Virus record (IMG/VR): IMGVR_UViG_3300020186_000013
Location: 1 to 64,000 of that record
Strand: one strand, 5' to 3'
DNA: 64,000 bases
This document shows, piece by piece, positions 26,600-44,206 of this stretch. Every line of letters starts with the position of its first letter. The first letter of the stretch is position 1. The notes beneath the pieces were generated by a model, which was given only the letters and a program-made list of their open reading frames with translations, made no database searches and was not told where the DNA came from. The position numbers and the translations under genes were made by a program.

Positions 26600-27780
26600 C
26601 CCTCCAGTTGTTTAACACGCCAAGCCTCGATCTCGCGACGGACCTCTTCGGCACTCGTCTTGTTGATTAGAAGCTCGACCAGTTCTGTCACCTCGACCGT
26701 CAACCCCGACATGCCGTTGTCGACCAGGAACTGCTCGACGTACGGCCGGAACGTGTTCTCCAGGGACGCCACGCGGCCCTTGACGTCGACGACCGTGCTC
26801 TTGCCGTCGACCTTCTCCGGGCGTACCTCGCTCGGGAACAGGTGCACCCGGTCGCCGACCGCCTTCTGGATGCGTCGCCACGCCCCAGTCACCGACGCCG
26901 AGTACGCTACCCGCATGAGCGGCCGGAGCATGTCCTCCGGCAGGTTCGCGTTGGCACCCCGAGCGTACGCCTCGTCGATGAACCGCTCGATCTCTTCCAG
27001 GAACTCGGTCATGTCCTCCTCGGATAAGACCGACGCCGTGAGCATCTGCCGGGTGACCAGCGGGATACGGCGGAACGACCCGTCACTGCGGAAGGCGACG
27101 AAGAACTTGTCCTGGGGCTCGATGATGCTCTGGACCGACATCGACCCCGGATTGGTCACCAGGATCTTCTGCCCGTCCTTGCCGATCAACGTCTTGACGA
27201 TGGACTCGCCGTGGTAATCGCCGGTTGCCACGCGAACGATCGGCAGCGGGATGTCTGCGGCCGACATCTGGGGCGACGCGATGCTCCCCATGAAGTCCCC
27301 CCAGCACTGGTGCAGGAACAGCCCAGTCGCCTCACCGGGGATCTCGTTGGTCAGCCAGTCCTGGATTTCCGCCGCCGGGGCGTAGTCGTGGCCGGCCCAC
27401 ACAAAGTCGCCGATGGTGACGACCTTCTTGTGGACGTGCTGCACCATCGCGTCGTTGTCGAACAGCCACGGCAGCACGCCAGGACCGGCGTGGTCGTGGT
27501 TGCCCTGGATGAACAGGAAGTTGACGCCCCCGCCCGCCAGCTCCTTGAGCTTCATGCGGAGGGGGGTGACCGCCATGCTCAGGTTGCGGGCACGGTCCAG
27601 GGAGTCGCCGAGGTCGACGACCGTCTGGACAGTGGGGCTGTTGGTCGCGTAGTCGATGACCTGCTGCAATGCGTGCAGCGAGTCGTCAATGCCGCGACTC
27701 GGGTAGCCGCCCCCGCAGTGGAGGTCGGCGTAGAGCACGGCGATGTCTTTCGGCTCGGTGGTAGCCTTCGTCTTTGCCAT
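26596..27780 (-). CDS. Mre11/SbcD-like metallophosphoesterase nuclease
   Basis: ADLH, GDSLD, GNHD, LHQ, GDYH, NPGS. Confidence 0.9.
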   Translation of the reverse strand: MAKTKATTEPKDIAVLYADLHCGGGYPSRGIDDSLHALQQVIDYATNSPTVQTVVDLGDSLDRARNLSMAVTPLRMKLKELAGGGVNFLFIQGNHDHAGPGVLPWLFDNDAMVQHVHKKVVTIGDFVWAGHDYAPAAEIQDWLTNEIPGEATGLFLHQCWGDFMGSIASPQMSAADIPLPIVRVATGDYHGESIVKTLIGKDGQKILVTNPGSMSVQSIIEPQDKFFVAFRSDGSFRRIPLVTRQMLTASVLSEEDMTEFLEEIERFIDEAYARGANANLPEDMLRPLMRVAYSASVTGAWRRIQKAVGDRVHLFPSEVRPEKVDGKSTVVDVKGRVASLENTFRPYVEQFLVDNGMSGLTVEVTELVELLINKTSAEEVRREIEAWRVKQLEG

Positions 27781-27785
27781 GAATC

Positions 27786-27801
27786 TAGAATCCAGTTATT
27801 A
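27786..27801. promoter_or_regulatory. degenerate palindromic site TAGAATCCAGTTATTA
   Basis: Gene junction; variant of recurrent 16-mer. Confidence 0.45.
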
Positions 27802-28332
27802 GGTCCTGATCTTCTTCACGATCTCTGTCGTACTCATGCCGTCGAGCATCGGGGCGAACAGCACGCACCCGCCGTTCTTGATGACGAAGTCCTCGCCGAC
27901 GATGTCCTCGTCGTCGTAGTAGCCGCCGCCCTTGATGAGCAGGTCGGGCCTAATCGTCTCGATCAGCTGGAGAGGCGTCGACTCCTCGAAGCCCGTCACC
28001 CAGTCCACGCCCTTGACCTGCCGCACAGCCTCGGCCCGCTGCTTGAACGCGACGATCGGTCGGCCCTCGCCCTTGAGCTGCCTCACCGAGTGGTCGGAGT
28101 TCAACGCGACCACGAGCATCATCTTCTCGGGGTCGAGCCACGTCCGCGTCTTGGCGTACCGCAGCACGGCGAGGTGCCCGGCGTGAAGTAGGTCGAAGCA
28201 CCCGTTGACGACGACGACGAAACCATCCATCGCCTTCCATTCCTTCACCCGGTTCTTGAGCGGCCCGTCCTGGTGCCACATGCAGACATTCTCGTCCCTC
28301 AGCATCTCACAGTAACGACTACCCGTGGTCAT
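27799..28332 (-). CDS. rfaE2: D-glycero-beta-D-manno-heptose 1-phosphate adenylyltransferase (HldE domain II)
   Basis: NGCFDLLHAGH, VVALNSD.SVRQLKGEGRP, RPDLLIKGG, STTEIV. Confidence 0.85.
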   Translation of the reverse strand: MTTGSRYCEMLRDENVCMWHQDGPLKNRVKEWKAMDGFVVVVNGCFDLLHAGHLAVLRYAKTRTWLDPEKMMLVVALNSDHSVRQLKGEGRPIVAFKQRAEAVRQVKGVDWVTGFEESTPLQLIETIRPDLLIKGGGYYDDEDIVGEDFVIKNGGCVLFAPMLDGMSTTEIVKKIRT

Positions 28333-29369
28333 CTCTTCTCCTGGTAAGCCTTCCCGAGATCTTCCGTCGTGAGTTTGTAAACCCCCTGATAGGCCACCGC
28401 CAGCGACGCAGCCAAGTTAGCCCGCTTCACGGCACCGTCAATATCATCGCGGTCCGACTCGGACGCCCCCACGAACCAGTCCGCCATCGCCGCCAGGAAC
28501 GTGTCCCCGGCCCCCGTCGTGTCGAGAAGGACTCGGGGGGTCGTCGGCGGCATTCGGGTCAGTAACCCGGTGTCCGTTCCGAAGATGGCACCGTACTGCC
28601 CGAGCGTGATGATCACGTACTCGAACGAAATGTCCGCGTCCTTGGCCATCTTCCGGTATAGGGTGTCAAACAACTGGAAGTGGGACTCCTCGATGTCGAC
28701 CGGCCTATACCGCCGCAACTCTTTGGCCAGCTTGGTGCCCTCCAAGCCACTGAATGCGATCGCCTCATCCAGGTTGCACTTGAAGATCGCCCGGTTGTGA
28801 CTGTACTTATGCCACCCCCGAGGGTCTCGCGGCGGGTCGATCAAGACGGTCAGGTGGTAGAGGCGGGCAAACGACAGCACGGCCCGAACGAACCGTTCCG
28901 ATAGGAAGCCCTTGTTGTAGTCCGAGAACACGATCACAGGTCGACAGCTCTCGACGGCGACGGTCACCTGCGTTAATGCCTCGTCGAACCAGTTGTCGGC
29001 CGGGCTGACGAGCATCTCGCGATCCAGCCGCATGAGTTGCCCGGACCTGGTGACAAATCGGTGCTTTACCGTCGTGACGTGCTCCGGCCAGGCGGCCAGC
29101 CAAGCGTCGATCTTGTTATCCGCACACAACTGCTGCACGATCTTCCCGTGCGTATCGTCGCCAACGAGTCCGAACAGCATCACCCGCCGGTCGAGACCCG
29201 CCAAGTTCGCCGCGACGTTGGCCGCACCGCCCAGGTTGTACGTCGTGCCCTCGTCCTTGAGGACGAGGACGTGATCATGCTCGGGCGACACCCCGCTCAC
29301 CGTGCCGCTAGTCGTAACGTCGAGCATCACGTCACCGATGACGATGACGTGCGGCTTCTCAGAACCCAT
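28329..29369 (-). CDS. rfaE1: heptose-7-phosphate kinase (HldE domain I, PfkB family)
   Basis: VIGDVMLD, LGGAANVAANL, TTVKHR, SDYNKG, DTTGAGDTF. Confidence 0.85.
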   Translation of the reverse strand: MGSEKPHVIVIGDVMLDVTTSGTVSGVSPEHDHVLVLKDEGTTYNLGGAANVAANLAGLDRRVMLFGLVGDDTHGKIVQQLCADNKIDAWLAAWPEHVTTVKHRFVTRSGQLMRLDREMLVSPADNWFDEALTQVTVAVESCRPVIVFSDYNKGFLSERFVRAVLSFARLYHLTVLIDPPRDPRGWHKYSHNRAIFKCNLDEAIAFSGLEGTKLAKELRRYRPVDIEESHFQLFDTLYRKMAKDADISFEYVIITLGQYGAIFGTDTGLLTRMPPTTPRVLLDTTGAGDTFLAAMADWFVGASESDRDDIDGAVKRANLAASLAVAYQGVYKLTTEDLGKAYQEKR

Positions 29370-29380
29370 GCTTACTCCTG

Positions 29381-29614
29381 CTATGTTGAGTCGTTGAAGT
29401 ATCTTCGGATGGCGTTGCGGACGTCGGACATCCTGGCCACCCGCGTCGCGGAGGCGTCCTCGCCCCGCTTACAGCGGTCGCACCGGCGTATCCTCTCCCG
29501 GTCGGGGGAGAGGAACTCTCGGCCGCACTTCATACAGTTACGCTTTCCCGGAACAGAAGCGTGGGGCATCTTGCCCGCACTGCCTTGACCGGGGTCGGGT
29601 CCTTCCGTGACCAT
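29381..29614 (-). CDS. small zinc-ribbon protein
   Basis: RNCMKCGREF.S....RRCDRC. Confidence 0.55.
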   Translation of the reverse strand: MVTEGPDPGQGSAGKMPHASVPGKRNCMKCGREFLSPDRERIRRCDRCKRGEDASATRVARMSDVRNAIRRYFNDST

Positions 29615-29654
29615 ACCCTGGCACCTCCTTGTGCCGGGTATTGTGACCGAACCG

Positions 29655-30536
29655 TCACGCGGGGTCTACTTCTCCTTCGGACTCGTCAACCGGCTTGGGC
29701 CGGCGGATGATCCGCTTCTTCCTCTCGTACACGATCCCATGGGCCTGCTTGCCGACGCTGGGCTTCTTAAACCGCTCCTGCGGGGGCTTGGTCGCCTCCA
29801 GAAAGTAGCCCACCAACCAGCGTTCGGTATCACTCAGGTCGTAGTCGAGCAGGTTGGCGGCGGTGACCATGTCCCGCATCACCTCGACCTGCCGCCGGCC
29901 GTTGTAGTAGTCGCCCTCCAGCGTCACGACGTGGTCCCAGCTGCCGGGACCCGCATCGAGCGTCTCCATGATGCTCTCCAGCAACGCCTTGACGCCGTAG
30001 TTGGTCAGCGTGCAGTACAGCGGACGGCTACACGCCTCACACGTGAGCGGGCTGTCGACCTCGGACGGCATCGCTTCGGGCTCGACGCCGTCCGGGGCAC
30101 AGTCCTCGCAGTAGTTGGCCGCGTTGCACGCATACTCCCTCGACAGAACCGTCCCGGTAGGCACCTTGCTCTCCTCCCCGGCGTACCTCGGCACGAACCG
30201 AGTGTGTTCCCCGCCGCACTTGCAGTGCTGACGGGCGATCTCGCCGTACTTCCCCTTCACCACGCACCGCCTCGTGTCGAAGGACCGCCCATGGGCGGAC
30301 CTGACGCGGGCGTGCTTGCCGAACAGTGCGTGCGTCGACGCCACCGGGTTGGCGTAGCACGGGTGGCAGGACACCGGGGCGGCACGACCGCCCCGGTACT
30401 GCACCCACGCGACGCCGTTGACCTTGTCGCGGAGGATCAGGTAGTCGTCGCTAGTGTCGTCGACGACCTCGATCCGCTTTCCGAGACTGCCGTCGTCGGC
30501 CTTGTTGAACAAGCACCACCTCCCAACGAAAGCCAT
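29655..30536 (-). CDS. hypothetical Cys-rich protein
   Basis: Several CxxC pairs; start set at MAFVG, uncertain. Confidence 0.5.
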   Translation of the reverse strand: MAFVGRWCLFNKADDGSLGKRIEVVDDTSDDYLILRDKVNGVAWVQYRGGRAAPVSCHPCYANPVASTHALFGKHARVRSAHGRSFDTRRCVVKGKYGEIARQHCKCGGEHTRFVPRYAGEESKVPTGTVLSREYACNAANYCEDCAPDGVEPEAMPSEVDSPLTCEACSRPLYCTLTNYGVKALLESIMETLDAGPGSWDHVVTLEGDYYNGRRQVEVMRDMVTAANLLDYDLSDTERWLVGYFLEATKPPQERFKKPSVGKQAHGIVYERKKRIIRRPKPVDESEGEVDPA

Positions 30537-30805
30537 GGCGGTCTCTCCCCGCACCCACGCCAGCACAACTCGATCGTACACCCGCAGTCGCCGGCGTGCT
30601 CGACGAGCTTGGCCTTGACGCGGTCCTCGAAGCAGTGGGCACAGAAGTGCATGACGGTGCGTCGCTTGGCCCGGATGTACTCGAACCACCAGTAGTACGG
30701 CCCGCCGTCGGGGTGCTTTACGCCACAAGTCGGGCAGGACTTGCGTCCGCCCAGTCGAACGCCCTCAAAATACTCGTTGTGATTTCGGACCTTGGTCTTT
30801 GCCAT
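30437..30805 (-). CDS. hypothetical zinc-finger protein
   Basis: CPTC...CAHC; coupled to upstream stop. Confidence 0.55.
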   Translation of the reverse strand: MAKTKVRNHNEYFEGVRLGGRKSCPTCGVKHPDGGPYYWWFEYIRAKRRTVMHFCAHCFEDRVKAKLVEHAGDCGCTIELCWRGCGERPPWLSLGGGACSTRPTTAVSESGSRSSTTLATTT

Positions 30806-31260
30806 TATGAGAAGAACTCGTCGAAGTTCTGGTCGAGCGGGCTGTCGCTCGAACCAGTTATCTCGTAGCCCAGCAACGTCAACATCTCACCCCAGGCGTC
30901 GGCCTGGGTCTCCAGCGACACCGACGGGTCGCTGTTGTACTCCCAGATCGCCAGCGGCTGCCCCGCCCGGCGGGCGATGACCGCGAGGATGCAGCAGAAG
31001 GCGATCTTGCCGACAGGGTCGCCGGCCGGGCGACCCTCGTCGAACGTCAACTCGAACCACTCCGACAGGGGACGCTTGCGACCCGACTTCTTCCCCTCAC
31101 GGCAGATGTCTGCCGCGACGAGACTCGGCACGTCCGCAGGCCAGTCCAACTTCTTGAAGCCCTCGGAGTCGGGCAGGGGCATGCCGTGGGGCCAGTAACT
31201 CGCCCCCCACGGATTACTCTTCGTCGTCGTCTTCTTCGTCATCATCATCCTCGTCCTCAT
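30805..31260 (-). CDS. hypothetical protein
   Basis: Tiling ORF. Confidence 0.55.
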   Translation of the reverse strand: MRTRMMMTKKTTTKSNPWGASYWPHGMPLPDSEGFKKLDWPADVPSLVAADICREGKKSGRKRPLSEWFELTFDEGRPAGDPVGKIAFCCILAVIARRAGQPLAIWEYNSDPSVSLETQADAWGEMLTLLGYEITGSSDSPLDQNFDEFFS

Positions 31261-31759
31261 CGTCCGACGGCCCCTGGCCGAAGGGGTTGTGGTCTCCGAG
31301 ATTGAAGAACTTCGTCAGCGGCCCGAAGAGGGTCTGCTTGATGGCCTCAGCCTGGGCCGTGCTCTGCCTCGCTTCCAGCTGCTCATCAGGCAGGTGGACG
31401 GTGTCGAGTATGTCGGCCACGCGGTGGAGCACGATGTGGCGGTCCTCGTGTGCCCGTGGCGACTCCCAACAGTTCTCGAAGTTGCGGACGACCAGATCCC
31501 AGCCCTCGCGAACCACCCGCATCCCTTGAGCCAGGCAAGCCAGGCGGTGCAAGGAGCACGCGGTGTGGATGTCGAGACTGGCCAGGGGGCGGGGCTGCTT
31601 GACGCACTCCGCACTCTTCCCCACCATCTTGTTCGAGCCGGCCCGGTAGTATTCGAGGAACTTCCCCAACTCCTCCAGGTGGCCGTAGAGTTGCACGGCG
31701 TTCACCGTCATCGACGGGAACGGCGGGCTCTGCACTTCCAATTCAGAATCCTTGCTCAT
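31214..31759 (-). CDS. hypothetical protein with acidic tail
   Basis: Tiling ORF. Confidence 0.6.
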   Translation of the reverse strand: MSKDSELEVQSPPFPSMTVNAVQLYGHLEELGKFLEYYRAGSNKMVGKSAECVKQPRPLASLDIHTACSLHRLACLAQGMRVVREGWDLVVRNFENCWESPRAHEDRHIVLHRVADILDTVHLPDEQLEARQSTAQAEAIKQTLFGPLTKFFNLGDHNPFGQGPSDDEDEDDDDEEDDDEE

Positions 31760-31762
31760 CGG

Positions 31763-32128
31763 TTAAGACTCCAGGTCCGGGTATTCACCGGCATCAAAAT
31801 TTGCGACGAACTTACGAACGGGCTCGGGCAACTCCACGGTCCCGACGGCCCTAAACACACGCGGACGCGGCTCTTCGCAGATCGTGACCTTGTCGCAGCC
31901 GACCATGAATGCGTACAAGTAGTTACCGTCGTCGTCCGTGCTCAGCATCGACTCCAGCCAACGGGCGGCGGGGCAGGTAAGCTCACACTCGGTCTCGCCC
32001 GTGTAACCGTACGCCGTCAGAGTATCGACGACAGCTGTTTCCGTGTCACCAAGCTCCCTCAACTTCTCCTCAACGAGTTTACGCATCTCCTCGTTGATTA
32101 TTCCCTGCTCACAGGGGTTCGCAGGCAT
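31763..32128 (-). CDS. hypothetical protein
   Basis: AGGAGGAG RBS + ATG. Confidence 0.65.
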   Translation of the reverse strand: MPANPCEQGIINEEMRKLVEEKLRELGDTETAVVDTLTAYGYTGETECELTCPAARWLESMLSTDDDGNYLYAFMVGCDKVTICEEPRPRVFRAVGTVELPEPVRKFVANFDAGEYPDLES

Positions 32129-32136
32129 AGCTCCTC

Positions 32137-32694
32137 CTAGAGGTCAGCTGGGTGCACCGAACAGATCGGGCACCCGTTGACCTTACCACAATGCTTGCAC
32201 ACGTCCGGCTCGGGTGGCGGCGGCGGGACAGGTGCGATCACCATATCCTCGATCGTCGTCATGAACCGGAGGATCTCATCACACACGTGTACCTTGCCCT
32301 CGCAGTAGTCTCCGAGGTCCGTGTTACGCTCAGACTTTTCGGCCACCTTCGCCCCGGCTCGAATCGCCTGAATGTGCTTGTAGAGCACGTCGTACAGGCA
32401 CGGTGATGATATGGTCCCAGGCATTACAGTCCTCCGGTGATCAACAAAGGGTTCACCATCTCCGTCTACGGCCCAGCGTGGATTGATGCCTGGGATCGTG
32501 CCGAGGCGAGCCATCAGGTCCTTGGTGGGCGGCTGCACTTTACGGGAAACGATGCTAACGAGAGCCCGGTGCACGCCGAGAGCCCTCGCCAGCTCACTCT
32601 GGTTCCCTTGGAACTTCCGATCTAAGACCAAGCAAACCCGCTTTCGAGCTGCCTCCTGCCATGCAACCCGGCAGGCATTCGGCTTCTTCACCAT
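32137..32694 (-). CDS. XRE/CI-like helix-turn-helix protein
   Basis: NQSELARALGVHRALVS...INPRWAVDGDGEPF. Confidence 0.7.
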   Translation of the reverse strand: MVKKPNACRVAWQEAARKRVCLVLDRKFQGNQSELARALGVHRALVSIVSRKVQPPTKDLMARLGTIPGINPRWAVDGDGEPFVDHRRTVMPGTISSPCLYDVLYKHIQAIRAGAKVAEKSERNTDLGDYCEGKVHVCDEILRFMTTIEDMVIAPVPPPPPEPDVCKHCGKVNGCPICSVHPADL

Positions 32695-32695
32695 G

Positions 32696-32983
32696 TCACC
32701 TCCTCACAGCAACTTGGACGTTGTAACCGATCCTCTTCAGCTCCCTGAGTAGCGGAGCGTACTGCTTGGGAGCGGCCGGGAACGACGTCGTAATGCAGTG
32801 CTCGTAGTCGGCGGCAACGTGACCGCCCACCATGACGTAGCACAAGCACAACCCGTTGTGGGTCGCAGGGTCGTCAGGGAAGAGGGCGTAGACGCCCTCG
32901 CGGTCGGCACGGAACACGACACGCTTACCTAGCTTCTTCTTCGTCTTCGTCTTCGTCTTCGTCTTCGTTGTTTTGTTGGTCAC
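32696..32983 (-). CDS. hypothetical protein
   Basis: VVFR..VYALFP...CY..VGGH...YAPLLRELKRIGY. Confidence 0.6.
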   Translation of the reverse strand: MTNKTTKTKTKTKTKKKLGKRVVFRADREGVYALFPDDPATHNGLCLCYVMVGGHVAADYEHCITTSFPAAPKQYAPLLRELKRIGYNVQVAVRR

Positions 32984-33893
32984 AGAAATACGACTCCATT
33001 CCCCTGTTCAATATCAGGTCCAGCACCCAACAACCGTGAACGTGCGGCCCGTGCCTCCGAGCGTGGGCACCCATCCTCGGGTCCGCCCCGGCGTCGTCCA
33101 GCATGTCCGCCAAAACGGGCATGTCGTGGAAGTCGCCTTTGGCGTACAGACTTTCCGCCATGCCCTTGATAGCCCCGCCGTGCCACAGCAGCAACGACGG
33201 GTCGAACACGGGGGCCGGATCGGGACCTCCATAGTGTTCGCCAAAGATGTCACGCAGCAAGGCAGACTGATAGCGACTGTAACACATCATACCACTAATG
33301 GGGGCGTCGTCCCGCCAGTACCCCCGTGCCGTTTCCTCGTCCACATGGGCCAGGTAACAAAGGGCAGCCGTCACTCTGGTAGCTTCTACCACACGGCGAC
33401 CGTCATACCAATCGCCCGCCAAAGACGTGAAGCCGAGCCGCCACCTCCGCATGTCGATAACGGGTGACGCGACTCGTGTGTGCACGACGTCCATCCGTAT
33501 ACACGATCTGATGCGAGGTCCCACGTACGCTAGGCCGAGAACGGGGGAACAGTCCGACGACTCGAACACGTACTCCGAGTCGTCCATCTCGTCGATGAAT
33601 TCGACCTGCTCCTTAATCCACTTCTCGCACCCCGCCATCGAGCGGTCGAGCAAGCGGCAATAGCACGCGAGCGAGAACAACCGCAACGGACGCAAGCTGG
33701 ACTTATGACGACTGACCACGCCGAGCATCGACTTCACATCCGAGTTCGCACCCCACCGGTCCTGATGCTTAACAAGGGCTTCGACGCGGCTCACCTCGGC
33801 CACGTACCGGTCGGGGTCGTTCGCGTACACGTCCATCGTCCGACGGAACGCGGCGACCTCCGCATCGGACAACTTCGTCGGTTTGGGAGGCAT
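32925..33893 (-). CDS. protein with Gemmata-type C-terminal domain
   Basis: LLRDIFG...DPSLLLWHGG...MPVLADMLDDAG...HGPHVHGCWVLDLIL. Confidence 0.7.
   Translation of the reverse strand: MPPKPTKLSDAEVAAFRRTMDVYANDPDRYVAEVSRVEALVKHQDRWGANSDVKSMLGVVSRHKSSLRPLRLFSLACYCRLLDRSMAGCEKWIKEQVEFIDEMDDSEYVFESSDCSPVLGLAYVGPRIRSCIRMDVVHTRVASPVIDMRRWRLGFTSLAGDWYDGRRVVEATRVTAALCYLAHVDEETARGYWRDDAPISGMMCYSRYQSALLRDIFGEHYGGPDPAPVFDPSLLLWHGGAIKGMAESLYAKGDFHDMPVLADMLDDAGADPRMGAHARRHGPHVHGCWVLDLILNRGMESYFCDQQNNEDEDEDEDEEEAR
32939..32968. repeat. (CTTCGT)5 microsatellite in a gene overlap
   Basis: Reads EDEDED in one minus frame and TKTKTK in the other. Confidence 0.85.
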
Positions 33894-33894
33894 G

Positions 33895-34896
33895 TCATTC
33901 CCTCTTGTTGAGTAACGTATCCAACAGCCAACACCCCCGGTGGTGGTAGCCGCCGTGCCGGGCGTGCTCGACGAAGACCGGCTCGGCGTCGGCCTCTTCG
34001 AGCATGTCGGCCAAGATGGGCATCACCTGGAAGTCGCGGTTGTCGTAGATGTGCTGGGCCATCTGCGGAATCGCACCGCCGTGCCACAATAGCAGGTCGG
34101 GCTTGACCGGTGGGTACATCCGGTAAGGGTTACCCAACGTATCACGGATGACATGGCAAAGTTTGTCAGTGACGCCGTTGTCGTAGGGCGTGCCGTCGCC
34201 ACGATTGAGCACGTTGATCGCCATGGACGCGAGCTTCTTCGAGATGCCCGTCGCCATCACGTGCCGCAGAGTCTGTGACGCTGCGTACTTGGGGTTGTAG
34301 AGGCAAGCAGACCACGCCGCCCGCTCGCAGTACATCCGCCGCCACAGCTTCATGTCCTCCTTGGCCATGTCCCGCTCGAACGACGAGACGCCGCCCGAAA
34401 TCGGTTCGCGACTGATGTAGTAGTCGTCCGAAGAGATCGGACTCGGAACCGGACTGGGCGTATTGCCGATGTTGTAGGCGACGCTGAACGCCCCCAGCAC
34501 ACGCCTGTCGCGACGCATCACCGACTGCCGATGGTTCTCCAACAGAGGCTCCACAAACTCGTAGGGATACTCATCCTCGGCGACGATCTCGGCGACCTGC
34601 ACCAACCTGCGGTGGACTGTGTCGAGCCGCGTCCACGTCAGGCGGCAAAAGGCGACGGCCATCAGACGGTACAGCCGGTCAGGCAGGTTGTCGACGCAGG
34701 CGAGGAGGTTGCACGGGTTGTACACCTCCAACCAAGCCCGCTCGTCGTGTTCGAGGACACGGTCAGTGACCTCGGAGATGCTCCTCGCGGAAGTATAGAT
34801 GTTGTCCACCCGCCGACTATACCGGTTGTAGACCAGAGGCAACTTGAAAGTCAGCAAGTCCTCGTCGTACCGCTCACTCATCATTAGCGTCGACAT
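33895..34896 (-). CDS. paralogue with Gemmata-type C-terminal domain
   Basis: IRDTLGNPY...LLLWHGG.IPQMAQHIYD.RDFQVMPILADMLEEA...HHRGCWLLDTLL; start uncertain. Confidence 0.7.
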   Translation of the reverse strand: MSTLMMSERYDEDLLTFKLPLVYNRYSRRVDNIYTSARSISEVTDRVLEHDERAWLEVYNPCNLLACVDNLPDRLYRLMAVAFCRLTWTRLDTVHRRLVQVAEIVAEDEYPYEFVEPLLENHRQSVMRRDRRVLGAFSVAYNIGNTPSPVPSPISSDDYYISREPISGGVSSFERDMAKEDMKLWRRMYCERAAWSACLYNPKYAASQTLRHVMATGISKKLASMAINVLNRGDGTPYDNGVTDKLCHVIRDTLGNPYRMYPPVKPDLLLWHGGAIPQMAQHIYDNRDFQVMPILADMLEEADAEPVFVEHARHGGYHHRGCWLLDTLLNKRE

Positions 34897-35152
34897 AAAA
34901 GTTCTCCTCGGACTCGGGGCACTCCTCCCGGAGTGTCGCCAGTCCTCGCTTGATTGACTTGTCTCCCACCCCGAACACTTCGACTTCATGGTCGCACCGT
35001 CCGCACTGGACGCAGACCGCGTCTTGCTCGACGCCACGATCGTTCTCCTTCTTGATCTCGGTCACTTCGCACTCGACCTTCATGGCTCTCTCCTTAGCAC
35101 CAGCCGGGCAGGTGGGCGTTGCACACCTGGTACACCCTCTGGTACGAAACAC
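34874..35152 (-). CDS. hypothetical small Zn-binding protein
   Basis: CGRC...ECP; GGAG RBS. Confidence 0.6.
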   Translation of the reverse strand: MFRTRGCTRCATPTCPAGAKERAMKVECEVTEIKKENDRGVEQDAVCVQCGRCDHEVEVFGVGDKSIKRGLATLREECPESEENFYVDANDE

Positions 35153-35375
35153 CGACCTTCCGGGCGATCTCGCGGAGGCTCATCTCCGGGTTATCAGCCT
35201 TGAGCTTCACGATCAACGGCACACGGCTCAACATGCCGTTGTACTTCACCCAACCAGGTAACTTCGAGTTGAGGACCTTGTACACCCGATGCGGGTGCAC
35301 CCCAACCTTGGCGGCGATGACCTTCACCGCCATCTTTGGGTTTTTCTTCTTCAGACTAACGATCTTGTCATCCAT
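35094..35375 (-). CDS. tandem HTH protein
   Basis: IAAKVGVHPHRVYKVL and LREIARKVGVSYQRVYQV. Confidence 0.7.
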   Translation of the reverse strand: MDDKIVSLKKKNPKMAVKVIAAKVGVHPHRVYKVLNSKLPGWVKYNGMLSRVPLIVKLKADNPEMSLREIARKVGVSYQRVYQVCNAHLPGWC

Positions 35376-36313
35376 CAGGCACTCCTCAGTTTGCCGTACG
35401 TCGACATCATCCGCACGCCGTGCACGGCATTCAAATAGTCGATCACCTGAGACGGCTCCGCTCGCCGAATCCAGCCGCCGGGGTACGGGGCCACCCGCAC
35501 CAGAGCGTACAGCAGCTGGGTACGACTCAGTTCCGTCGATCGGCCCCGGAGGTACTTGGTTTTAACGGTCTCCAGCGGGCTCTCGGCGTCCTCGTGGACC
35601 ACGAACAGCCCGCCACGGTAGCGGAGGGGCTGCTCCTTCGAGAAGTCGATCGACTGAATGACCACGCCACCTAGAAACTGGCTTTTAGGGATGTCAACTA
35701 ACTCGCCCTGCCGCTGGCTGACAACGCTGGCGGTCGCGAGACGCAGCTTGTCCCGAAACACCTCGCCGACCGTCATCGCCTCGTGGTAGGGCTTGGCCGT
35801 CACGAAGTCCTGCCGCATCGTCGAGATCAACTTGACCGGCGGCAGGTCGGGCTTCAGCCCCTTGTCAGAGAAGAACGCCTTCTCCATCCGCTTGAATGGT
35901 TCCAAGACGTTGTTCCGGACCCAACAGAACGGGCAGATGTGGTCGAATCGGCACGACTGCCCAGACGCCTTCTTGGTCCGCACTCCCACGGGCGGGCAGT
36001 TCCGGACGAACTGGAACTTCTTGTCGTCGGCCAGCTTGTCCCAGCCCTCATTCCGGAGGTTGGTCAGGAGCATGCGGTACAGTCCCGACGTCCTGACCGC
36101 GAGTCGATCACTGGCGGCGGTCCGCTCCTTGACGTCCATCCCGTCGTAGAGGCGGCGGATCAGACACAGGCGACACGCCGTCTGGCGGTACGACTTGGGC
36201 GTGAAGTTCAACTCCCACTTGATGTCGGTCGGGGATGCGGTGGACACAAGCAACTCCAACTTTAGGTAGTTATAACGAACCAAAGTTTTTTTCCGGTGCC
36301 GAGTACCCCCCAA
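35375..36313 (-). CDS. hypothetical protein with C..C..ICPFC motif
   Basis: 312-aa ORF; start uncertain. Confidence 0.6.
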   Translation of the reverse strand: MGGTRHRKKTLVRYNYLKLELLVSTASPTDIKWELNFTPKSYRQTACRLCLIRRLYDGMDVKERTAASDRLAVRTSGLYRMLLTNLRNEGWDKLADDKKFQFVRNCPPVGVRTKKASGQSCRFDHICPFCWVRNNVLEPFKRMEKAFFSDKGLKPDLPPVKLISTMRQDFVTAKPYHEAMTVGEVFRDKLRLATASVVSQRQGELVDIPKSQFLGGVVIQSIDFSKEQPLRYRGGLFVVHEDAESPLETVKTKYLRGRSTELSRTQLLYALVRVAPYPGGWIRRAEPSQVIDYLNAVHGVRMMSTYGKLRSA

Positions 36314-36570
36314 AACAGGGGGGCATACGAACTAAAGTTTGGTTCGTTAGTAGAATACTACTAAGCTCCCATGGCTCCTGCTCTTCGTTTGGAGCCCAGG
36401 AGGACTTGCAGAAGATAACGACCCTTCGACATGTCGACACCAACAGGGTTGTACGCTTCCTTACTACCATGCTGATGTCGACAGTAACCGCTCCGCACGT
36501 CGACAAAACGGTGGTGGCCCGCGACACAAGACCGGTCTGTACCCACGCACGTTAGACACTGCACCCTCCG

Positions 36571-37317
36571 CTACGCCCACCCACCGACCTGCTCGTCGAG
36601 CGTGTTGAGCATGCCCACCAGGGGATAGATGCCGGGGAACTCGGGGTGCTCGCTGGTCCAATGGAACGAGTAGTTGATACCCGCCGTGGCGTCTTCCAGT
36701 TCCGTGTAGCTGCAACTCTTGTAACGACCCTCCGAGATTGGTACGGGCTCGTTCAAGACCTCGACGATCCGCTTCACGAGGGCCTCGACGTCGCCGTCCG
36801 CCTCGCTACAGCGAACCTCGCACACCCAGTTATCTACGCTGTTCGCGATCTGACGGGGAGCGAAGCTGGGGGATGTCCACGGCTTACTTGCAGTCGCAGT
36901 CCTTCTTGGCAATTCGCCAGAGACCGTCGTTCTTGACCCGACAGGCGTGACACCAGTACCGGACCTTCTGATCGAAGACTCGACCTTTTTCTTTGGCGTG
37001 GATGCCAAAGAGTCGCCGGACTTGGATGGGGCGGACGAAATAGTCAACGTGTCCGCAGGCGTCGCACTTGGGGACGGTTCGTTCTCTGGCCACTTCTCCT
37101 CCTCTCGGTCGCCCTTCTTGATCTCCTTGCGGCGATCCTTGGCGACCTTGCAGTTGTTGTCGATCAGCTCGTGGAGGTTGTTAGCCTCGGTGGGGCTGAG
37201 TTTGAACACTACGGTCTTCACCCCTGTGGCGTCCTCCTTGTGGGCGATGAGGGTGATGAACGTCCCCTCGTTGTTGGTGGACGCCGTGAAGGTAAACCCG
37301 TTAATCGACGTGGCCAT
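36571..37317 (-). CDS. hypothetical protein (possibly two genes)
   Basis: GAGGA RBS + ATG at 37317; middle overlaps alternative ORF 36884..37093. Confidence 0.4.
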   Translation of the reverse strand: MATSINGFTFTASTNNEGTFITLIAHKEDATGVKTVVFKLSPTEANNLHELIDNNCKVAKDRRKEIKKGDREEEKWPENEPSPSATPADTLTISSAPSKSGDSLASTPKKKVESSIRRSGTGVTPVGSRTTVSGELPRRTATASKPWTSPSFAPRQIANSVDNWVCEVRCSEADGDVEALVKRIVEVLNEPVPISEGRYKSCSYTELEDATAGINYSFHWTSEHPEFPGIYPLVGMLNTLDEQVGGWA

Positions 37318-37327
37318 GTAGTCCTCG

Positions 37328-37705
37328 TTAGACGGTTGCTGTGGTCTCGGGGTGCGGTTTCGGCATGTGGCCCGAGTGCCGCTTGCACACGACGTAGTAC
37401 GCCCCCGGCCGCTCGATGCTGTCCGCGATGAGTACCGCCGGGTTGCCGCAGTAGATGGGTCCCGATTGGGGGTAATCGTCACCGATCTGCCGGGCACAAC
37501 GCATGCCGGGCGGTGCTGCCCGGACGTTGGTCATGTCCTCCTTACCCCCGCAGTAGAAGGTCGCCTTGGGGATGTAGTCGCCGTGGAGGAAGTCGTAGAG
37601 GAGTTTGTTGACCCGTGCGAGGGTCTCGGCTTTATTGTCTTTCAAGAGGCCCTGGTTGAATAACAGGGCGGCTGCACCGAGGCACTGTTCTTTGCTGGCA
37701 CCCAA
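37328..37705 (-). CDS. hypothetical protein
   Basis: GGAGG RBS. Confidence 0.55.
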   Translation of the reverse strand: MGASKEQCLGAAALLFNQGLLKDNKAETLARVNKLLYDFLHGDYIPKATFYCGGKEDMTNVRAAPPGMRCARQIGDDYPQSGPIYCGNPAVLIADSIERPGAYYVVCKRHSGHMPKPHPETTATV

Positions 37706-37717
37706 TGGGCACCTCCG

Positions 37718-37945
37718 TTAGTCGTGTCGGTCTTCAAACGCTCTCGCACCGTTCTCGTCGCTGGGGCTCGGGTCGAACCTATCGGGCTGATTCCAGGAGT
37801 CATCGACGTACCGCATGGGCTTCTTATTCGGAACGTGCACGGGGATTCGGCACTGCGGGCACGTCTCGAACGCACTGTCCGCAGAGAACAGGCGGTCGCA
37901 CTTACCGCTGTTGCACTTCTTCATTCCAGGCGGAAGCGGGTCCAT
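37718..37945 (-). CDS. small zinc-ribbon protein
   Basis: C...C...CPQC. Confidence 0.5.
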   Translation of the reverse strand: MDPLPPGMKKCNSGKCDRLFSADSAFETCPQCRIPVHVPNKKPMRYVDDSWNQPDRFDPSPSDENGARAFEDRHD

Positions 37946-37948
37946 GGT

Positions 37949-38290
37949 TCACTTCCTCCGTTTCTTGGGTTCCGTGACCCACCCGACGGGCGGGCTCAGA
38001 CCGAGTTCTCGCAAGGCCGCATTGATCTCGACGAGGGTCTTCTCGCCGAAGTTGGTCATCCCCATGAGGGCCTCGACGGACTGCTCGACGAGGTTGCCCA
38101 CGAGGATGACCCCGTGGTTCTCCAGCGTGTTGACAATCCGCACAGGGATGTTGAGTTCTGCGATGGGCGTCCGCAAGAGTTGGTTGACCCTGTAGACGTC
38201 CCGCTGCTGTTGCGTCCATCCCGCCATGACCTCGTCAGATGGTCCCTTCTCGCGACCTGGGGTGCGGCGGCGTCTGTTCGGCGGGGGCAT
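37949..38290 (-). CDS. stand-alone RNA polymerase alpha C-terminal domain protein
   Basis: LRTPIAELNIPVRIVNTLENHGV..VGNLV...L.GMTNFGEKTL.EI..AL.ELGL. Confidence 0.85.
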   Translation of the reverse strand: MPPPNRRRRTPGREKGPSDEVMAGWTQQQRDVYRVNQLLRTPIAELNIPVRIVNTLENHGVILVGNLVEQSVEALMGMTNFGEKTLVEINAALRELGLSPPVGWVTEPKKRRK

Positions 38291-38796
38291 TACTTGTCCT
38301 CGGCCTGTTCGTCGCCCTCGCCCACCTTGTAGAGGGGTGGAATGTCGGGGTGCGGGGTCGTGTGGATGACGATAGCGAACGGCCGACCGTTCTTCCTGAA
38401 GCCGGAGATGCGGACATGCGGTATCCTGACATCGTCCTCCTCCCGATAGGATGACAGGTCCACCGAAACATAGATGTCGTAGTAGTTCTTCGATTGGAGC
38501 CAGCTCACGAAGCCGCTCAGGCAGAACTCGAACCCCTTGTAGATCAACTCCCCGTCGCGGTGCCCGCCGACCCGCTCACCAGCGGCCTCGCAGAACTGGA
38601 TGGCCCACGCACTCATCGGGTCGGCCGGGTCGGTGTCCTTCCGCAACGCGGCCGAGTACGCGAGCACCGTGTTCTCGGGCACGGTCACGAACTTGAGGAA
38701 CGTCTTGGCGAGCCGTGTTAGCCACTTCCGTGTCTTCGCGTCGCAGTTGGATGGGAACGGGTTGCCGTTGCCGTCGTTGAACTCTGTCTCGTCCAC
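38290..38796 (-). CDS. hypothetical protein
   Basis: Tiling ORF. Confidence 0.6.
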   Translation of the reverse strand: MDETEFNDGNGNPFPSNCDAKTRKWLTRLAKTFLKFVTVPENTVLAYSAALRKDTDPADPMSAWAIQFCEAAGERVGGHRDGELIYKGFEFCLSGFVSWLQSKNYYDIYVSVDLSSYREEDDVRIPHVRISGFRKNGRPFAIVIHTTPHPDIPPLYKVGEGDEQAEDK

Positions 38797-38798
38797 GG

Positions 38799-39128
38799 TT
38801 AGTTCCTACTGTGGTCTCGGAGTTCCGAGATGGTGGAGACCTGTGCCGCTCTGAGTTCGCCTTGGCTGTAGCCCAGCCAGCGATGGGCCTTACCAATGTC
38901 CTGCCCCGGACCCTCCGGGATGAAGGCGTCCAGGCAGCGGCGGCACATCCACGCGAGGTGTGCCGCCAAGCTCCCGACGTCGATGTAGTTGTACCCGTAC
39001 TCGGTCTCGTCCAACTGCTTGGCGGTAACCGGGAACTCTTTGATGAACCGCCCGCAGAACGGTTGGTCGAGCGACGTGAGTGCGTCGTAATAGAACCGCA
39101 ATGTCGACTTCAACTTCTCGTTCGTCAT
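38799..39128 (-). CDS. hypothetical protein
   Basis: ATGA-coupled to dcd stop; GKAHRWLGYSQG. Confidence 0.6.
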   Translation of the reverse strand: MTNEKLKSTLRFYYDALTSLDQPFCGRFIKEFPVTAKQLDETEYGYNYIDVGSLAAHLAWMCRRCLDAFIPEGPGQDIGKAHRWLGYSQGELRAAQVSTISELRDHSRN

Positions 39129-39775
39129 GCCGCGTCCTTTTTTATGAACTCCTTCCAGAAGCCGGAAGGTTTGGGGCCACGCTGCCCGCTGTACTTGCCA
39201 ACGTACGGGCGGCGGGCACCTTCGAGTGTGGAGTAAGCAATCTGACACACAGGGACGTTAGCGTACACCCGCAGCGGGTGCACAACGGTGATCTCCAGCG
39301 TCCACGTCCCGCAGAACCCGTCGTCGCCGAAGCCCGCCGTGATGTGGATGCACATACCCAGGCGACCCACCGACGAGCGGCCCTCGATACACGGCACGAA
39401 GCCGTGCGTCTCGGTGTACTCGTTGGTCGCCGCCAGGTAGAGCGTGCCGGGGAACAGCATGGCCCCGTGCTCGGGGATGATGAGCTGCTGGGTCGGGTTG
39501 TCCTTCTTCATGTCGAGAGCCACGCTCTCCCAGTACCACACGCCCTCTGCTCGGCTGTCGAACGCGGGCGGCGTCGACGCACTCTGCGTCCAGTCGTTCT
39601 GGAAGAGCAGCAGTTGATCGTCGCGGGTGACCAACGGGGCCTTGTACGCCAGCAGCTGCGGCGACATGGTGAGGTTATAGCTGTTCGGGTTCAGCCTCGC
39701 CTCATCGAACGGGTCGATGACGATGTTGCCCTTCTCTATCTGCCTGACGATCTCCGGCCCGCTGAGCAGTCCCAT
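39125..39775 (-). CDS. dcd: dCTP deaminase
   Basis: IDPF....LNPNSYNL, EGRSSVGRLG, TAGFGDDGFCG.WTLEI, Y.GKY.GQ. Confidence 0.9.
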   Translation of the reverse strand: MGLLSGPEIVRQIEKGNIVIDPFDEARLNPNSYNLTMSPQLLAYKAPLVTRDDQLLLFQNDWTQSASTPPAFDSRAEGVWYWESVALDMKKDNPTQQLIIPEHGAMLFPGTLYLAATNEYTETHGFVPCIEGRSSVGRLGMCIHITAGFGDDGFCGTWTLEITVVHPLRVYANVPVCQIAYSTLEGARRPYVGKYSGQRGPKPSGFWKEFIKKDAA

Positions 39776-39965
39776 AGGTATCCTCCAAGACGTTCATCAG
39801 CCCGGTGGGGAAGACTTCCAAGACCTCCCCCGAGCTGAGTTTGGGAGGGTCCCTGTCGATCCAGTAGACGCCATTGTAGATAAACACGAACCGAGGTTTA
39901 CCGTCGGTTCGTGCGTTGGCCAGAGCCTGGTTCAGGGCCTTCTTTTTGTCGTTGCCTGCGTTCAT
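39702..39965 (-). CDS. hypothetical protein
   Basis: Coupled ORF. Confidence 0.45.
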   Translation of the reverse strand: MNAGNDKKKALNQALANARTDGKPRFVFIYNGVYWIDRDPPKLSSGEVLEVFPTGLMNVLEDTYGTAQRAGDRQADREGQHRHRPVR

Positions 39966-40717
39966 CGGTCACGCTTCCGTTCGGATGGGGCTTTGTGGTA
40001 GTCGGCGACACGCCCAACATACTTGCAGGTGTGCGTCTTCAAGTCGACGCCACAGTACGGGCAGAGGCCCTTCCGCAGGTCCTCGTTGCGACGGTCGATC
40101 TCGGTCTTCATGGCGACGGTCGAGACGTCGTCGAGATCTTTATGGTAGCCCACGGTGGTCTCCTTGAATTCTTCCTCGACGTCGAGGATCTCGATCTTTT
40201 CGGGCACGATGAACTCGGCCTCGGCCCTTGCGGGGGCGATCACGGCGTTCTCGGCCAAAGGCGAGCGAGTTGGTTCGATCTGAGACGAGGAGATCTCCTT
40301 GGTCTCCCAGTCGAGGTACAGCTCCATCTCGCCTTCCTGAAGCTCCTTGTTGACGTACTCTATAGCCGCCGGGCCGTTGGCTGCCTGGATGTCCACTTCA
40401 GCGGTGTCGAGGTAGCTGTTGGTTCGCTTCTCCTCCCTCGACACGTGTACGCGGTACACGGGCATAGCTACTCCATGATGGTGACGTTCTTCATCTGGTA
40501 CACGGCGATCCACTCCAGGCAGCAGGCACTGCATAGACTCCCTGTTTCGCAGGGACTGCAAGATCATGTCGGCGATCTCTTCCACCGTCACCTCGGCGGC
40601 GATGGTATCGTAGTCCTCGTCCTCGGTGCCGAGGACGTGCCACAGGTCCTTCATCCGGACCTTCTTGTACGGGCCGTGCATCCGGAACGGCTCGCTCAGC
40701 TTGTGCGGCTTGCTCAT
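39962..40717 (-). CDS. hypothetical protein (internal RBS+ATG at MPVYRV suggests possibly two units)
   Basis: Tiling ORF; C-terminal CPYC. Confidence 0.5.
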   Translation of the reverse strand: MSKPHKLSEPFRMHGPYKKVRMKDLWHVLGTEDEDYDTIAAEVTVEEIADMILQSLRNRESMQCLLPGVDRRVPDEERHHHGVAMPVYRVHVSREEKRTNSYLDTAEVDIQAANGPAAIEYVNKELQEGEMELYLDWETKEISSSQIEPTRSPLAENAVIAPARAEAEFIVPEKIEILDVEEEFKETTVGYHKDLDDVSTVAMKTEIDRRNEDLRKGLCPYCGVDLKTHTCKYVGRVADYHKAPSERKRDR

Positions 40718-40917
40718 TAGAGTGCCTCGTAGGGGTAGTCCTTATCGTCGTTCTTCGTGACCTCGTCCTCGTTGTCTTTGTCGAGATCGTCCCAGTCCCG
40801 CACCTCGACCTCGACGTTCGGCTTGTTCGACAGGACCGTTTGGACGACGCCGCCCTCGACGACGACCAGGATTTTGATCGGCTTCGGTGCCGGTGTCGGT
40901 GCTACTTCGTCAGCCAT
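40717..40917 (-). CDS. small hypothetical protein
   Basis: ILVVVEGGVVQ.V.....VEV.DWD phage-type motif. Confidence 0.6.
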   Translation of the reverse strand: MADEVAPTPAPKPIKILVVVEGGVVQTVLSNKPNVEVEVRDWDDLDKDNEDEVTKNDDKDYPYEAL

Positions 40918-41600
40918 GCTCGGTACTCCTTGGGGGTCTTGAACCCTAGGTTGTGGGCGATCTGCCAACGCAGGCGATCCTGCGTCACTTCAGGGGCCGT
41001 GTAGTCGATCGTGTTGACGATGTCGTAACCCAGACGCTTCAGCTGGCAGGCCACGTCCTGGGCGATCTGGATGCGTTCCTCGTCGTTCGCGTAGGCGTAG
41101 TCGTCGATGCCCCACACGGAGGCTTCGGCGTCGAGGTACTCACACTTGACGCCCCAGTATTCCCAGCCGTCCCTGTACCACTTCACCAGTTGCTCGTACG
41201 TCCGGCGAAGGTTCTCGGCCTCCATCTGCCGGGCGACCTGCGTGGCGTACCCCCGGTGGTGGAAGTACGCGAAGTTGCCGCACGTCTTCTCCCACTTGTC
41301 CTTGTCGATCACGACCAGGTGGCGGCGTCTGTTGAACCAGACCGTGTGCCCCTGGTTGTACTGCGGCTCCTCGTCCTCGACGTTACGCAGCGTGTGCTCG
41401 TACCCGTCGCAGTCCTCCCATGGGGGCTCGCTGCGGTGCTCGTCGACTACGATCTCGCAAGCCTCCAGGATGTCGTTGAAGTCTATGATCGCGTCCGTGG
41501 TGGTCTGGACGAGCGTGGTGATGATCATCTTGTCGCCCTTCCTCTCACGCCGCACCTTCCGCTTGGTCTCTCTCCGGTACTCTTTCTTACGCTTGGCCAT
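40902..41600 (-). CDS. hypothetical protein
   Basis: GAGGAG RBS + ATG at 41600; W.YWGV...ASVWGI. Confidence 0.65.
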   Translation of the reverse strand: MAKRKKEYRRETKRKVRRERKGDKMIITTLVQTTTDAIIDFNDILEACEIVVDEHRSEPPWEDCDGYEHTLRNVEDEEPQYNQGHTVWFNRRRHLVVIDKDKWEKTCGNFAYFHHRGYATQVARQMEAENLRRTYEQLVKWYRDGWEYWGVKCEYLDAEASVWGIDDYAYANDEERIQIAQDVACQLKRLGYDIVNTIDYTAPEVTQDRLRWQIAHNLGFKTPKEYRAWLTK

Positions 41601-41679
41601 GACTCCTCTAGTGTGAACGCGAAGGCCACCCAGATCTGGGTGGCCTTCGCGTATTGAGTAGGGCGGTCCGTCAAGCACG

Positions 41680-42216
41680 TCACGGGACGAGCTTAGCGGC
41701 CTCAACAGCTTCGCGACGACGACGACTAAGGTCCGGTCGGGTAAACCGGAACCAGTAGGCATCCGAGCCGTCCTCGTAGAAACCACGGTCGGTCTCCACG
41801 CAGCTGAACCCCAGGATCTTCCTGGTGAAGAACAATTGAGCCGCCAGGTTGTGTTCACGCACGCGGGCGGTGTACACACGACGACGGTTCGGGCTCTGAG
41901 GTCCTACCAGAGTCCGTACAACGTGGCTTCCAATGCCCTGCCGTTGGAATTCCGGTAGAATAGCAATGCGGGCGATCCTGACCTCATCGGCACTCATCCG
42001 GTAAAGGAAGGAGCCGATGATCTCTTCATCCATGAACACGGCTTTGACGATCTGCCCGGACTTGTTGGCGAACTCTCGGAAGTCCGCCTTAGTCCATCCT
42101 TCCGTGGGGAAGCAAATTCGGTGCACGTGCTCAAGGGCGGCGAGTGCACGGCGGTCATACCACCGCACGTCGACGAACCCTTTCTTAGTCAGCACGGTCT
42201 GCCTCCTTTGTGTCAA
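41680..42216 (-). CDS. GNAT (RimI-like) acetyltransferase
   Basis: RIAILPEFQRQGIGS, VREHNLAAQLFF, GF, FYEDGSDAY. Confidence 0.85.
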   Translation of the reverse strand: MTQRRQTVLTKKGFVDVRWYDRRALAALEHVHRICFPTEGWTKADFREFANKSGQIVKAVFMDEEIIGSFLYRMSADEVRIARIAILPEFQRQGIGSHVVRTLVGPQSPNRRRVYTARVREHNLAAQLFFTRKILGFSCVETDRGFYEDGSDAYWFRFTRPDLSRRRREAVEAAKLVP

Positions 42217-42857: not shown

Positions 42858-43197
42858 TGTGAAGCCTTACGCTTTCTATGGTCATGACCTCGACACTCTC
42901 TCGCAGGTGGGCACCGTAGTCAATGGCCCGTGCGAACTGCTCCTGCAACAGACGCAGGGTCTGGAACATGGAGCCGAAGATGGCATCGGCGGACGACACC
43001 GGACCCTTGTCCGACATCCAGACGCCCTTCTGCACCTGGGCGTCGTTTAACGCCCCGTAGTAGTCAAACGTGACGCCAATGCTCCGCAGCATCGGGAACT
43101 GTTGGAACAACGCCAGGGCCAGTTCCTTCTGGGCGTTACACAGGTGCTCATCGAACTGCACCTTCTCGGTCTCCGGCTGCTCGGGAACATCGCTCAC
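42760..43197 (-). CDS. hypothetical protein
   Basis: Tiling ORF; coiled-coil C-terminus. Confidence 0.6.
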   Translation of the reverse strand: MSDVPEQPETEKVQFDEHLCNAQKELALALFQQFPMLRSIGVTFDYYGALNDAQVQKGVWMSDKGPVSSADAIFGSMFQTLRLLQEQFARAIDYGAHLRESVEVMTIESVRLHNDIQEKTTELQRLEAAIQGKRDDAPDVQRNPG

Positions 43198-43208
43198 GGG
43201 TTGCCCTC

Positions 43209-43224
43209 TAAATTCCAGTTTCTA
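43209..43224. promoter_or_regulatory. palindromic site (reverse complement TAGAAACTGGAATTTA)
   Basis: Gene junction; one mismatch to the 1349/55980 copies. Confidence 0.6.
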
Positions 43225-43756: not shown

Positions 43757-43765
43757 AACTCCAGG

Positions 43766-43978: not shown

Positions 43979-44012
43979 CCGTAGTCCTCCAGCTTGTAAG
44001 GAAAGTTGGGTA

Positions 44013-44204: not shown

Positions 44205-44206
44205 GG

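Follow-up and report, generated by a model that had tools for sequence, protein, structure and literature searches.

The DNA described here raises the question of why a large phage carries two adjacent genes for proteins that resemble a planctomycete protein family and what these proteins might do during infection. The window, by which we mean the whole stretch of DNA that was analyzed, is the first 64 kb (positions 1 to 64,000) of the 208,145-bp virus record IMGVR_UViG_3300020186_000013 in IMG/VR. The two genes, each defined by its open reading frame (ORF) and translation, encode P0002 (33895-34896, minus strand; 333 amino acids [aa]) and P0001 (32925-33893, minus strand; 322 aa). Our results demonstrate that P0001 and P0002 are full-length, very diverged members of an unnamed family of ~220-aa proteins found in the Gemmataceae.

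An earlier note on this DNA had described tandem paralogs with common C-terminal motifs at 32925-34896. The ORFs lie at exactly these positions, and BLASTP confirms the relationship: residues 212-297 of P0001 and 249-331 of P0002, corresponding to the last ~86 residues, are 49% identical with an E value of 1e-23, and the similarity is therefore far beyond chance. No second significant BLASTP segment was found between the two proteins. The C-terminal module of P0002 (residues 245-333; 33898-34164, minus strand) contains the motifs IRDTLGNPY, LLLWHGG, PILADML, and H..GCW, and the same motifs occur in that of P0001 (residues ~212-297; 33003-33257, minus strand). The motif set quoted in the note is present, with the correction that its LRD actually reads IRD in P0002. 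The frame of P0002 is open further upstream, to a GTG at 35037. At the junction of the genes (33894-33905, minus strand), the TGA of P0002 is followed after 1 base by the ATG of P0001, and GAGGG is found just upstream of this ATG. No promoter-like or terminator-like site was seen between P0002 and P0001 on the minus strand. Judging from this sequence, the two proteins are probably cotranslated. P0001 ends with an acidic, D/E-rich tail (32933-32968), and a C-terminal tail of this kind is also present in a 181-aa protein (31218-31264).

Members of the family start with TEAEWL at the N terminus and end with GCW at the C terminus. When aligned with 120 bacterial members, P0001 and P0002 are homologous over their full lengths. 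Both proteins keep the N-terminal residues W55, R74, R77, L78, R85, and E103 (P0002 numbering) and retain the C-terminal motifs RD..G.P, Y..R.F..P.LAD.L, and H..GCW. Profile matches place them in the family at E values of 1e-23 to 1e-63. The AlphaFold (AF2) model of P0002 (predicted local distance difference test [pLDDT] score of 75; predicted template modeling [pTM] score of 0.74) is helical in its confident part. Over residues 45-332, P0002 matches three Planctomycetota clusters of the ESM Atlas named "hypothetical protein," with template modeling (TM) scores by row of 0.76-0.88 across 196-213 residues. Planctomycetota clusters are likewise matched by the Atlas model of P0001, with TM scores by row of 0.72-0.82 over residues 36-298 (0.69-0.82 overall) and scores of 0.92-0.93 in the feature search. 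The Atlas structural matches of both proteins are exclusively Planctomycetota clusters. The likeness that the earlier note had seen in the C-terminal motif is thus real, but it is not the whole of the relationship, as the alignment and superposition of both proteins with the ~220-aa planctomycete proteins extend over almost the entire length.

The phage proteins are nevertheless far from their bacterial relatives. Identity between phage and host proteins is 41-52% in the C-terminal module versus ~27-32% for the full-length proteins, and even in the module it does not exceed 52% with any bacterial copy. When the P0002 module was used in a word search, the only matches were P0002 itself, one typical 220-aa protein of the planctomycete type, and P0004, a relative that is also intact and displays 61% identity overall and 79% within the module. 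Three features set the phage versions apart from the bacterial proteins: an N-terminal extension of ~45 residues, a poorly modeled insert in the middle, which in P0002 spans residues ~142-233 and is disordered or helical, and Ala residues at positions 304 and 312.

The bacterial proteins have a simple architecture. Long open frames had suggested fusion proteins at some copies, but these frames are artifacts of high GC content, and the family is therefore a single two-part protein of ~220 aa. Its N-terminal ~145 residues constitute an all-helical domain, and this is followed by a strongly conserved C-terminal module of ~75 residues. Conservation in the family covers residues 1-60 and 131-220 and is highest in the C-terminal module, with a hypervariable stretch at residues 61-130. 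Conserved ends with a hypervariable middle are the pattern that would be expected for a diversified binding surface.

The two Ala residues fall within a set of Cys and His residues in the C-terminal module. Among 199 modules from 115 loci, with all sequences included, C304, H311, C312, H318, and C322 (P0002 numbering) are present in 96, 98, 88, 95, and 96%, respectively. Their spacing, C-x6-H-x6-H-x3-C, suggests a metal site. In P0001, P0002, and P0004, and in no other sequence among the 199, both 304 and 312 are Ala, with H311, H318, and C322 retained; this Ala pair occurs in none of the 195 nonphage copies, which come from host genomes and other viral contigs. P0001 and P0002 thus lack the full Cys/His set of the family, and because of this alteration we consider the phage proteins a variant subfamily. 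P0001 and P0002 further share residues that are rare in nonphage copies (M298, 1%; L270, 0%; H272, 9%), and a quick tree groups them, although the grouping is unsupported and the branches are long. Given the common rare residues and the joining in the tree, the simplest interpretation is that the gene was duplicated in the phage lineage.

The distribution of the family was examined in bacterial contigs representing one genome per species, with loci found by back-translated patterns and confirmed by tblastn. This led to 327 confirmed loci, and the best 80 of the 327 almost all carry the labels Gemmataceae, Gemmata, Fimbriiglobus, Zavarzinella, Urbifossiella, Frigoriglobus, Gemmatales, or Planctomycetota. 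The planctomycete affiliation proposed in the earlier note withstands this taxonomic check. The number of matches to a profile of the C-terminal module is at least 109 in Gemmata sp. IIL30, 53 in Gemmataceae CJuql4, and 19 in Zavarzinella formosa. A further 54 matches are found in an 8.4-Mb metagenome-assembled genome (MAG) labeled "uncultured Alcaligenaceae" (G005; loci L007, L025, and L047). As this MAG is listed as belonging to the same family as Gemmata sp. IIL30, its NCBI label is probably wrong. Of 61 genomes sampled from that family, 46 contain the module, the number of matches per genome ranging from 1 to at least 85; of 150 genomes sampled from elsewhere in the phylum, none does. These numbers bear out the statement of the earlier note that the C-terminal motif is highly multiplied in Gemmata-like planctomycetes. 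With one member as the query, a word search yielded at least 7737 protein clusters. The copies in Gemmata are either solitary or arranged as tandem pairs and triplets, as in the case of adjacent genes for proteins of 225, 260, and 211 aa.

Family members are also found outside the Gemmataceae. Another 35 viral contigs, among them some with a lower GC content, carry copies, and several of the short "viral" contigs may be host fragments. Seven module matches with E values of 1e-24 to 1e-31 are present in a 0.8-Mb MAG labeled Candidatus Staskawiczbacteria, a member of the candidate phyla radiation (CPR) (G004; locus L009 on MHOT01000006.1). At 39.9% GC, MHOT01000006.1 does not have the composition of a stray Gemmata contig. 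This bacterium may represent another type of parasite or episymbiont which acquired the Gemmataceae family.

The source databases name the members of the family "hypothetical protein." P0001 and P0002 have no match in Pfam, NCBIfam, PHROGs, or PADLOC, and four host members have none in Pfam or NCBIfam. The SMI1/KNR4-family annotation mentioned in the earlier note is not supported: none of 126 members matches the Pfam model at E values up to 0.01, and the predicted fold is all-helical and resembles SsdAI/Imm5. Pfam models of the SMI1/KNR4 type do not match P0001 or P0002 at E values up to 1. The SMI1/KNR4 (SUKH) fold was also considered and rejected, as the model of a host member contains only helices and no SUKH structure is among the best matches of either this model or that of P0002. 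SUKH domains are alpha+beta, in contrast to the purely helical models obtained here. An automatic SMI1/KNR4 name is attached to one of the family's ESM Atlas clusters and is probably the origin of the label in the note. The SUKH proteins do resemble this family in other ways, in that they belong to the world of polymorphic-toxin immunity, are multiplied in some bacteria, and have been repeatedly acquired by viruses (PMC3482391).

A structural relationship was found when the model of a host member (pLDDT 96) was compared with 48,161 PDB representatives. The top match is 7jtu_B, with a Z score of 12.2 and a root mean square deviation of 3.1 Å over 140 residues, covering residues 1-143 of the model. 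Two DUF416 structures follow with Z scores of 9.4 each, and the next unrelated row has a Z score of 5.4. The corresponding part of P0002 (residues ~45-254; 34135-34764, minus strand) superposes on the same structures in VIA-align, where the Z scores of the P0002 model are 7.0 with 7jtu_B, 7.6 with 2q9r_A, and 7.2 with 3f7c_A, and 3.9 in the next row. The structure 7JTU is that of SsdA, a deaminase toxin of the type VI secretion system, in complex with its all-helical immunity protein, SsdAI (PMC7901873). As modeled, the N-terminal ~145 residues of the family share the SsdAI fold.

The comparison can be extended to Imm5, an immunity family tied by comparative genomics to DYW-type deaminase toxins (PMC3482391). 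The Pfam model Imm5_like (PF21805) matches 6 of the 126 members at their N termini at E values up to 0.01, and 2 of these matches, with 28.4 and 26.4 bits, are above the gathering score of 25 bits; few members therefore reach the Pfam threshold with this N-terminal region. SsdAI from Pseudomonas syringae, whose toxin SsdA is a single-strand DNA deaminase, and Imm5 resemble the family in their all-helical fold. However, the sequence identity of SsdAI to the family is 14% or less, and the conserved C-terminal Cys/His module is an addition that is absent from SsdAI and from a true Gemmataceae Imm5_like protein. The DUF416 proteins (YjaG-like; PDB 2Q9R and 3F7C) have a similar arrangement of helices, but they display no Pfam or sequence match with the family and, judged by sequence, do not have the C-terminal Cys/His motif. 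The C-terminal module itself has no clear structural match, and an Atlas feature search with the module alone, restricted to named clusters, gave no usable match. Sequence searches of the PDB with the family profile or a member led only to chance helical matches. With its many paralogs in small tandem arrays, the family can be compared with the polyimmunity loci described for polymorphic toxin systems (PMC3482391). As in these orphan immunity arrays, there are many diversified immunity-type paralogs without adjacent toxins, but the family differs in reaching more than 100 copies per genome and in its restriction to one planctomycete family.

The record that carries P0001 and P0002 is a genuine phage, based on its replication and packaging genes. 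The window codes for a phage DNA polymerase, the large terminase (TerL), a DnaB-type helicase, a primase, an SbcC-like protein, and a thymidylate synthase, and the record is 93% complete by CheckV. The identical pair of 333-aa and 322-aa proteins was called by independent gene callers in five further contigs, which represent essentially the same phage and include one of 215 kb. The gene pair is intact in contigs of three Joint Genome Institute samples and two SRA runs, and ~4 kb around the pair is present in 10 microbial-mat metagenome sequencing runs. The stretch around the pair was found in no RNA run. Among 50,697 deposited phage genomes, TerL has less than 30% identity to that of any phage, and tblastn with P0002 gave no match. 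The TerL ORF (44207-47416, plus strand) encodes 1069 aa, about twice the usual size, and matches known terminases in two pieces with only about half of it covered; an insert or intein may be present inside this ORF. The sole tRNA of the window is a tRNA-Arg (anticodon TCT; 29496-29593, minus strand), which at 98 bases is unusually long.

The gene pair sits in a run of small, early-looking genes on the minus strand, within an accessory block of seven small genes (31763-35375, minus strand; ~3.6 kb). In order, the block consists of a helix-turn-helix (HTH) gene with an HTH domain match (35094-35375, minus strand), a gene for a protein of 69/92 aa, P0002, P0001, and genes for a 95-aa protein, an HTH-like protein of 185 aa (32137-32694, minus strand), and a 121-aa protein. 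On L133, a more distant syntenic phage contig, the homologs of 35375-36313 and 31214-31759 are adjacent, with no family member between them. L133 also harbors, in the same order, a homolog of 30805-31260 and the heptose kinase, cytidylyltransferase-like, and SMC/SbcC-type ATPase genes. Because the flanking genes adjoin on L133 without the block, the block is lineage-specific. The first 90 residues of the 185-aa HTH-like protein are 61% identical to the product of a Gemmataceae gene (G258:C28; L125), and at the DNA level the two genes are 79% identical over 116 bases.

Several other genes in this part of the phage are of interest. A stand-alone RNA polymerase alpha C-terminal domain of 113 aa (37949-38290, minus strand; PF03118, E value of 1.6e-14) is encoded 3 kb from the pair. 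The gene is kept in related contigs, and its product may be a phage device against host transcription. A PfkB-type heptose-7-phosphate kinase gene (28329-29369, minus strand) adjoins a cytidylyltransferase-like gene (27799-28332, minus strand), an arrangement resembling a split HldE/RfaE. The two products are 33-36% identical to bacterial enzymes, and the pair is present also on L133. A dCTP deaminase homolog is found at ~39125-39775, for which the Pfam match was obtained with the equivalent gene of contig L118, and the thymidylate synthase gene is located at 2152-4269. Together with the HldE-like pair, these genes hint at nucleotide or DNA-sugar modification. Adjoining the heptose kinase gene on L133 is a gene (7824-9734) for a 636-aa protein with a weak match to a Cas12f1-like/TnpB-type domain.

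We consider it likely that the phage infects a member of the Gemmataceae. This is supported by the restriction of the family to the Gemmataceae and by the second Gemmataceae-type gene in the same block. The GC content of the phage also speaks for such a host, being similar at 61% to the 64-65% of those loci of Gemmata, Zavarzinella, and Gemmataceae that were checked. A comparison of positions 25000-44999 of the window with 252 Gemmataceae genomes yielded no spacer-like match, a weak negative with only two candidates scored per genome. Short DNA matches of high identity, which could pass for spacers, stem mostly from low-complexity GAC/GAG repeats that encode the acidic tails of P0001 and the 181-aa protein. 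The heptose kinase gives no clue to the host because its 33-36% identity is to bacteria of many phyla alike. Gene content alone is no proof of the current host, since the family is also present in other viral contigs and in a CPR genome with a GC content of 40%. As of 2017, Gemmata had no isolated phage, and the one proposed candidate was a 27-kb fragment from a metagenome (PMC5707555).

How, then, might the pair serve the phage? We infer that the genes were captured from the host and that their products bind toxins. One copy would have been acquired by the phage lineage from a Gemmataceae host or a mobile element of the host and placed in the ~3.6-kb accessory block, where it would have been duplicated and diverged, with both copies losing two conserved Cys residues. 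Each phage protein would bind and block a toxic effector acting in the infected Gemmataceae cell, as immunity proteins do. The effector could be an abortive or defense toxin encoded by the host or a toxin delivered by neighboring cells, and the two paralogs would cover two specificities. By analogy with SsdAI, we put forward such an immunity-like, toxin-neutralizing role tentatively, giving it somewhat less than an even chance. Several results weigh against it. There is no toxin gene next to the phage pair, whose neighbors are HTH and small genes without known function, and none beside the seven Gemmata copies examined, whose neighbors are TPR, DUF1559, DUF1501, sigma70-WD40, and patatin genes; the family as such has no known toxin partner. 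There is no match to the Imm5_like model in P0001 or P0002, and none in Gemmata sp. IIL30 in spite of its more than 100 copies. Comparison by hhalign of the family profile with a true Gemmataceae Imm5_like protein hit the expected region only weakly (probability of 2%; E value of 0.022), and Foldseek searches of the PDB with the P0002 and host-member models gave nothing significant. Middling Z scores arise by chance among helical folds, and a common fold is no proof of common function. Tree support for duplication in the phage is weak, with long branches. A search for the DYW-type deaminase (PF14432) found it in none of five Gemmataceae genomes, but control genomes were likewise empty, and the result is hence uninformative.

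The ordinary planctomycete genes next to the Gemmata copies, with no toxin gene among them, would also agree with a family that is not involved in immunity at all. It could be a regulatory, chaperone, or adaptor protein of the Gemmataceae, DUF416-like with a metal-binding module, whose process is redirected by the phage. DUF416 is nearly as good a structural match as SsdAI (Z scores of 9.4 with the host model and 7.6 with the phage model), and the phage pair lies amid HTH proteins and near the stand-alone alpha C-terminal domain. We nevertheless find this unlikely: more than 100 paralogs per genome, a hypervariable middle, and small tandem arrays are typical of conflict systems rather than housekeeping regulators, and the top structural match is SsdAI, a proven immunity protein. 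Similarly doubtful is the suggestion of the earlier note that the phage copies mimic or titrate the host family, by which they would be decoys that, with the two Cys lost and the rest of the protein changed, would compete through the C-terminal module for a common partner of the host paralogs and thereby disable the function of the host family, for example, in defense or self-recognition. The module is indeed the part best conserved both between phage and host and within the host family, and the replacement of both Cys residues by Ala in the phage copies only would fit a binding-competent, otherwise inactive version. However, no common partner is known, and the N-terminal fold and conserved residues have also been kept, which would be needless in a pure C-terminal decoy. 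The position of the pair in a lineage-specific block that is lacking in the syntenic relative, and its lack of any PHROG, PADLOC, Pfam, or NCBIfam family, would be consistent with passenger genes picked up from a Gemmataceae genome in a mobile block, without a role in infection. This is very unlikely, as both genes are intact, duplicated, and tightly coupled, their products are highly diverged from the bacterial copies even in the best-conserved module, and P0004 is an intact relative; these features point to long retention under selection and not to recent hitchhiking. Finally, the family is otherwise overwhelmingly bacterial, and the presence of possible host fragments among the short "viral" contigs raises the question of whether bacterial DNA was misassembled into, or miscalled as, a viral record. 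With the phage replication and packaging genes in the window, the size and completeness of the record, the same gene order in independent assemblies including the 215-kb contig, and copies unlike any in bacteria, such an artifact is extremely improbable.

Viral capture of polymorphic-toxin immunity domains is already known in general (PMC3482391), and the pair therefore adds no new principle. What is new is a large, uncurated, Gemmataceae-specific family, a phage subfamily without the two Cys residues (Ala 304/312), and a link between a jumbo phage and the Gemmataceae. The host family is notable in itself, with thousands of clusters, a copy number that reaches about 100 in a single genome, a predicted fold like that of a proven toxin-immunity protein, and no model in either Pfam or NCBIfam. 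As natural mutants, the Cys-less phage variants could help reveal the binding partner of the family. The 208-kb phage, which can be linked to the Gemmataceae through a host-restricted family, provides a concrete phage-host pair to seek in microbial mats. In the broadest view, the Gemmataceae would run a huge, as yet undescribed self/nonself or toxin-immunity system on this family, with more than 100 diversified paralogs per genome, an SsdAI-like fold, and a metal-binding C-terminal module, and parasites would have repeatedly stolen it. Examples would be this phage with its Cys-less duplicated pair, the other viral contigs with copies, and the Staskawiczbacteria genome with seven. We regard this as quite improbable. 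If it were true, the presence of the family would mark who lives on the Gemmataceae, and the phage pair would represent a new kind of anti-defense protein derived from host immunity genes.

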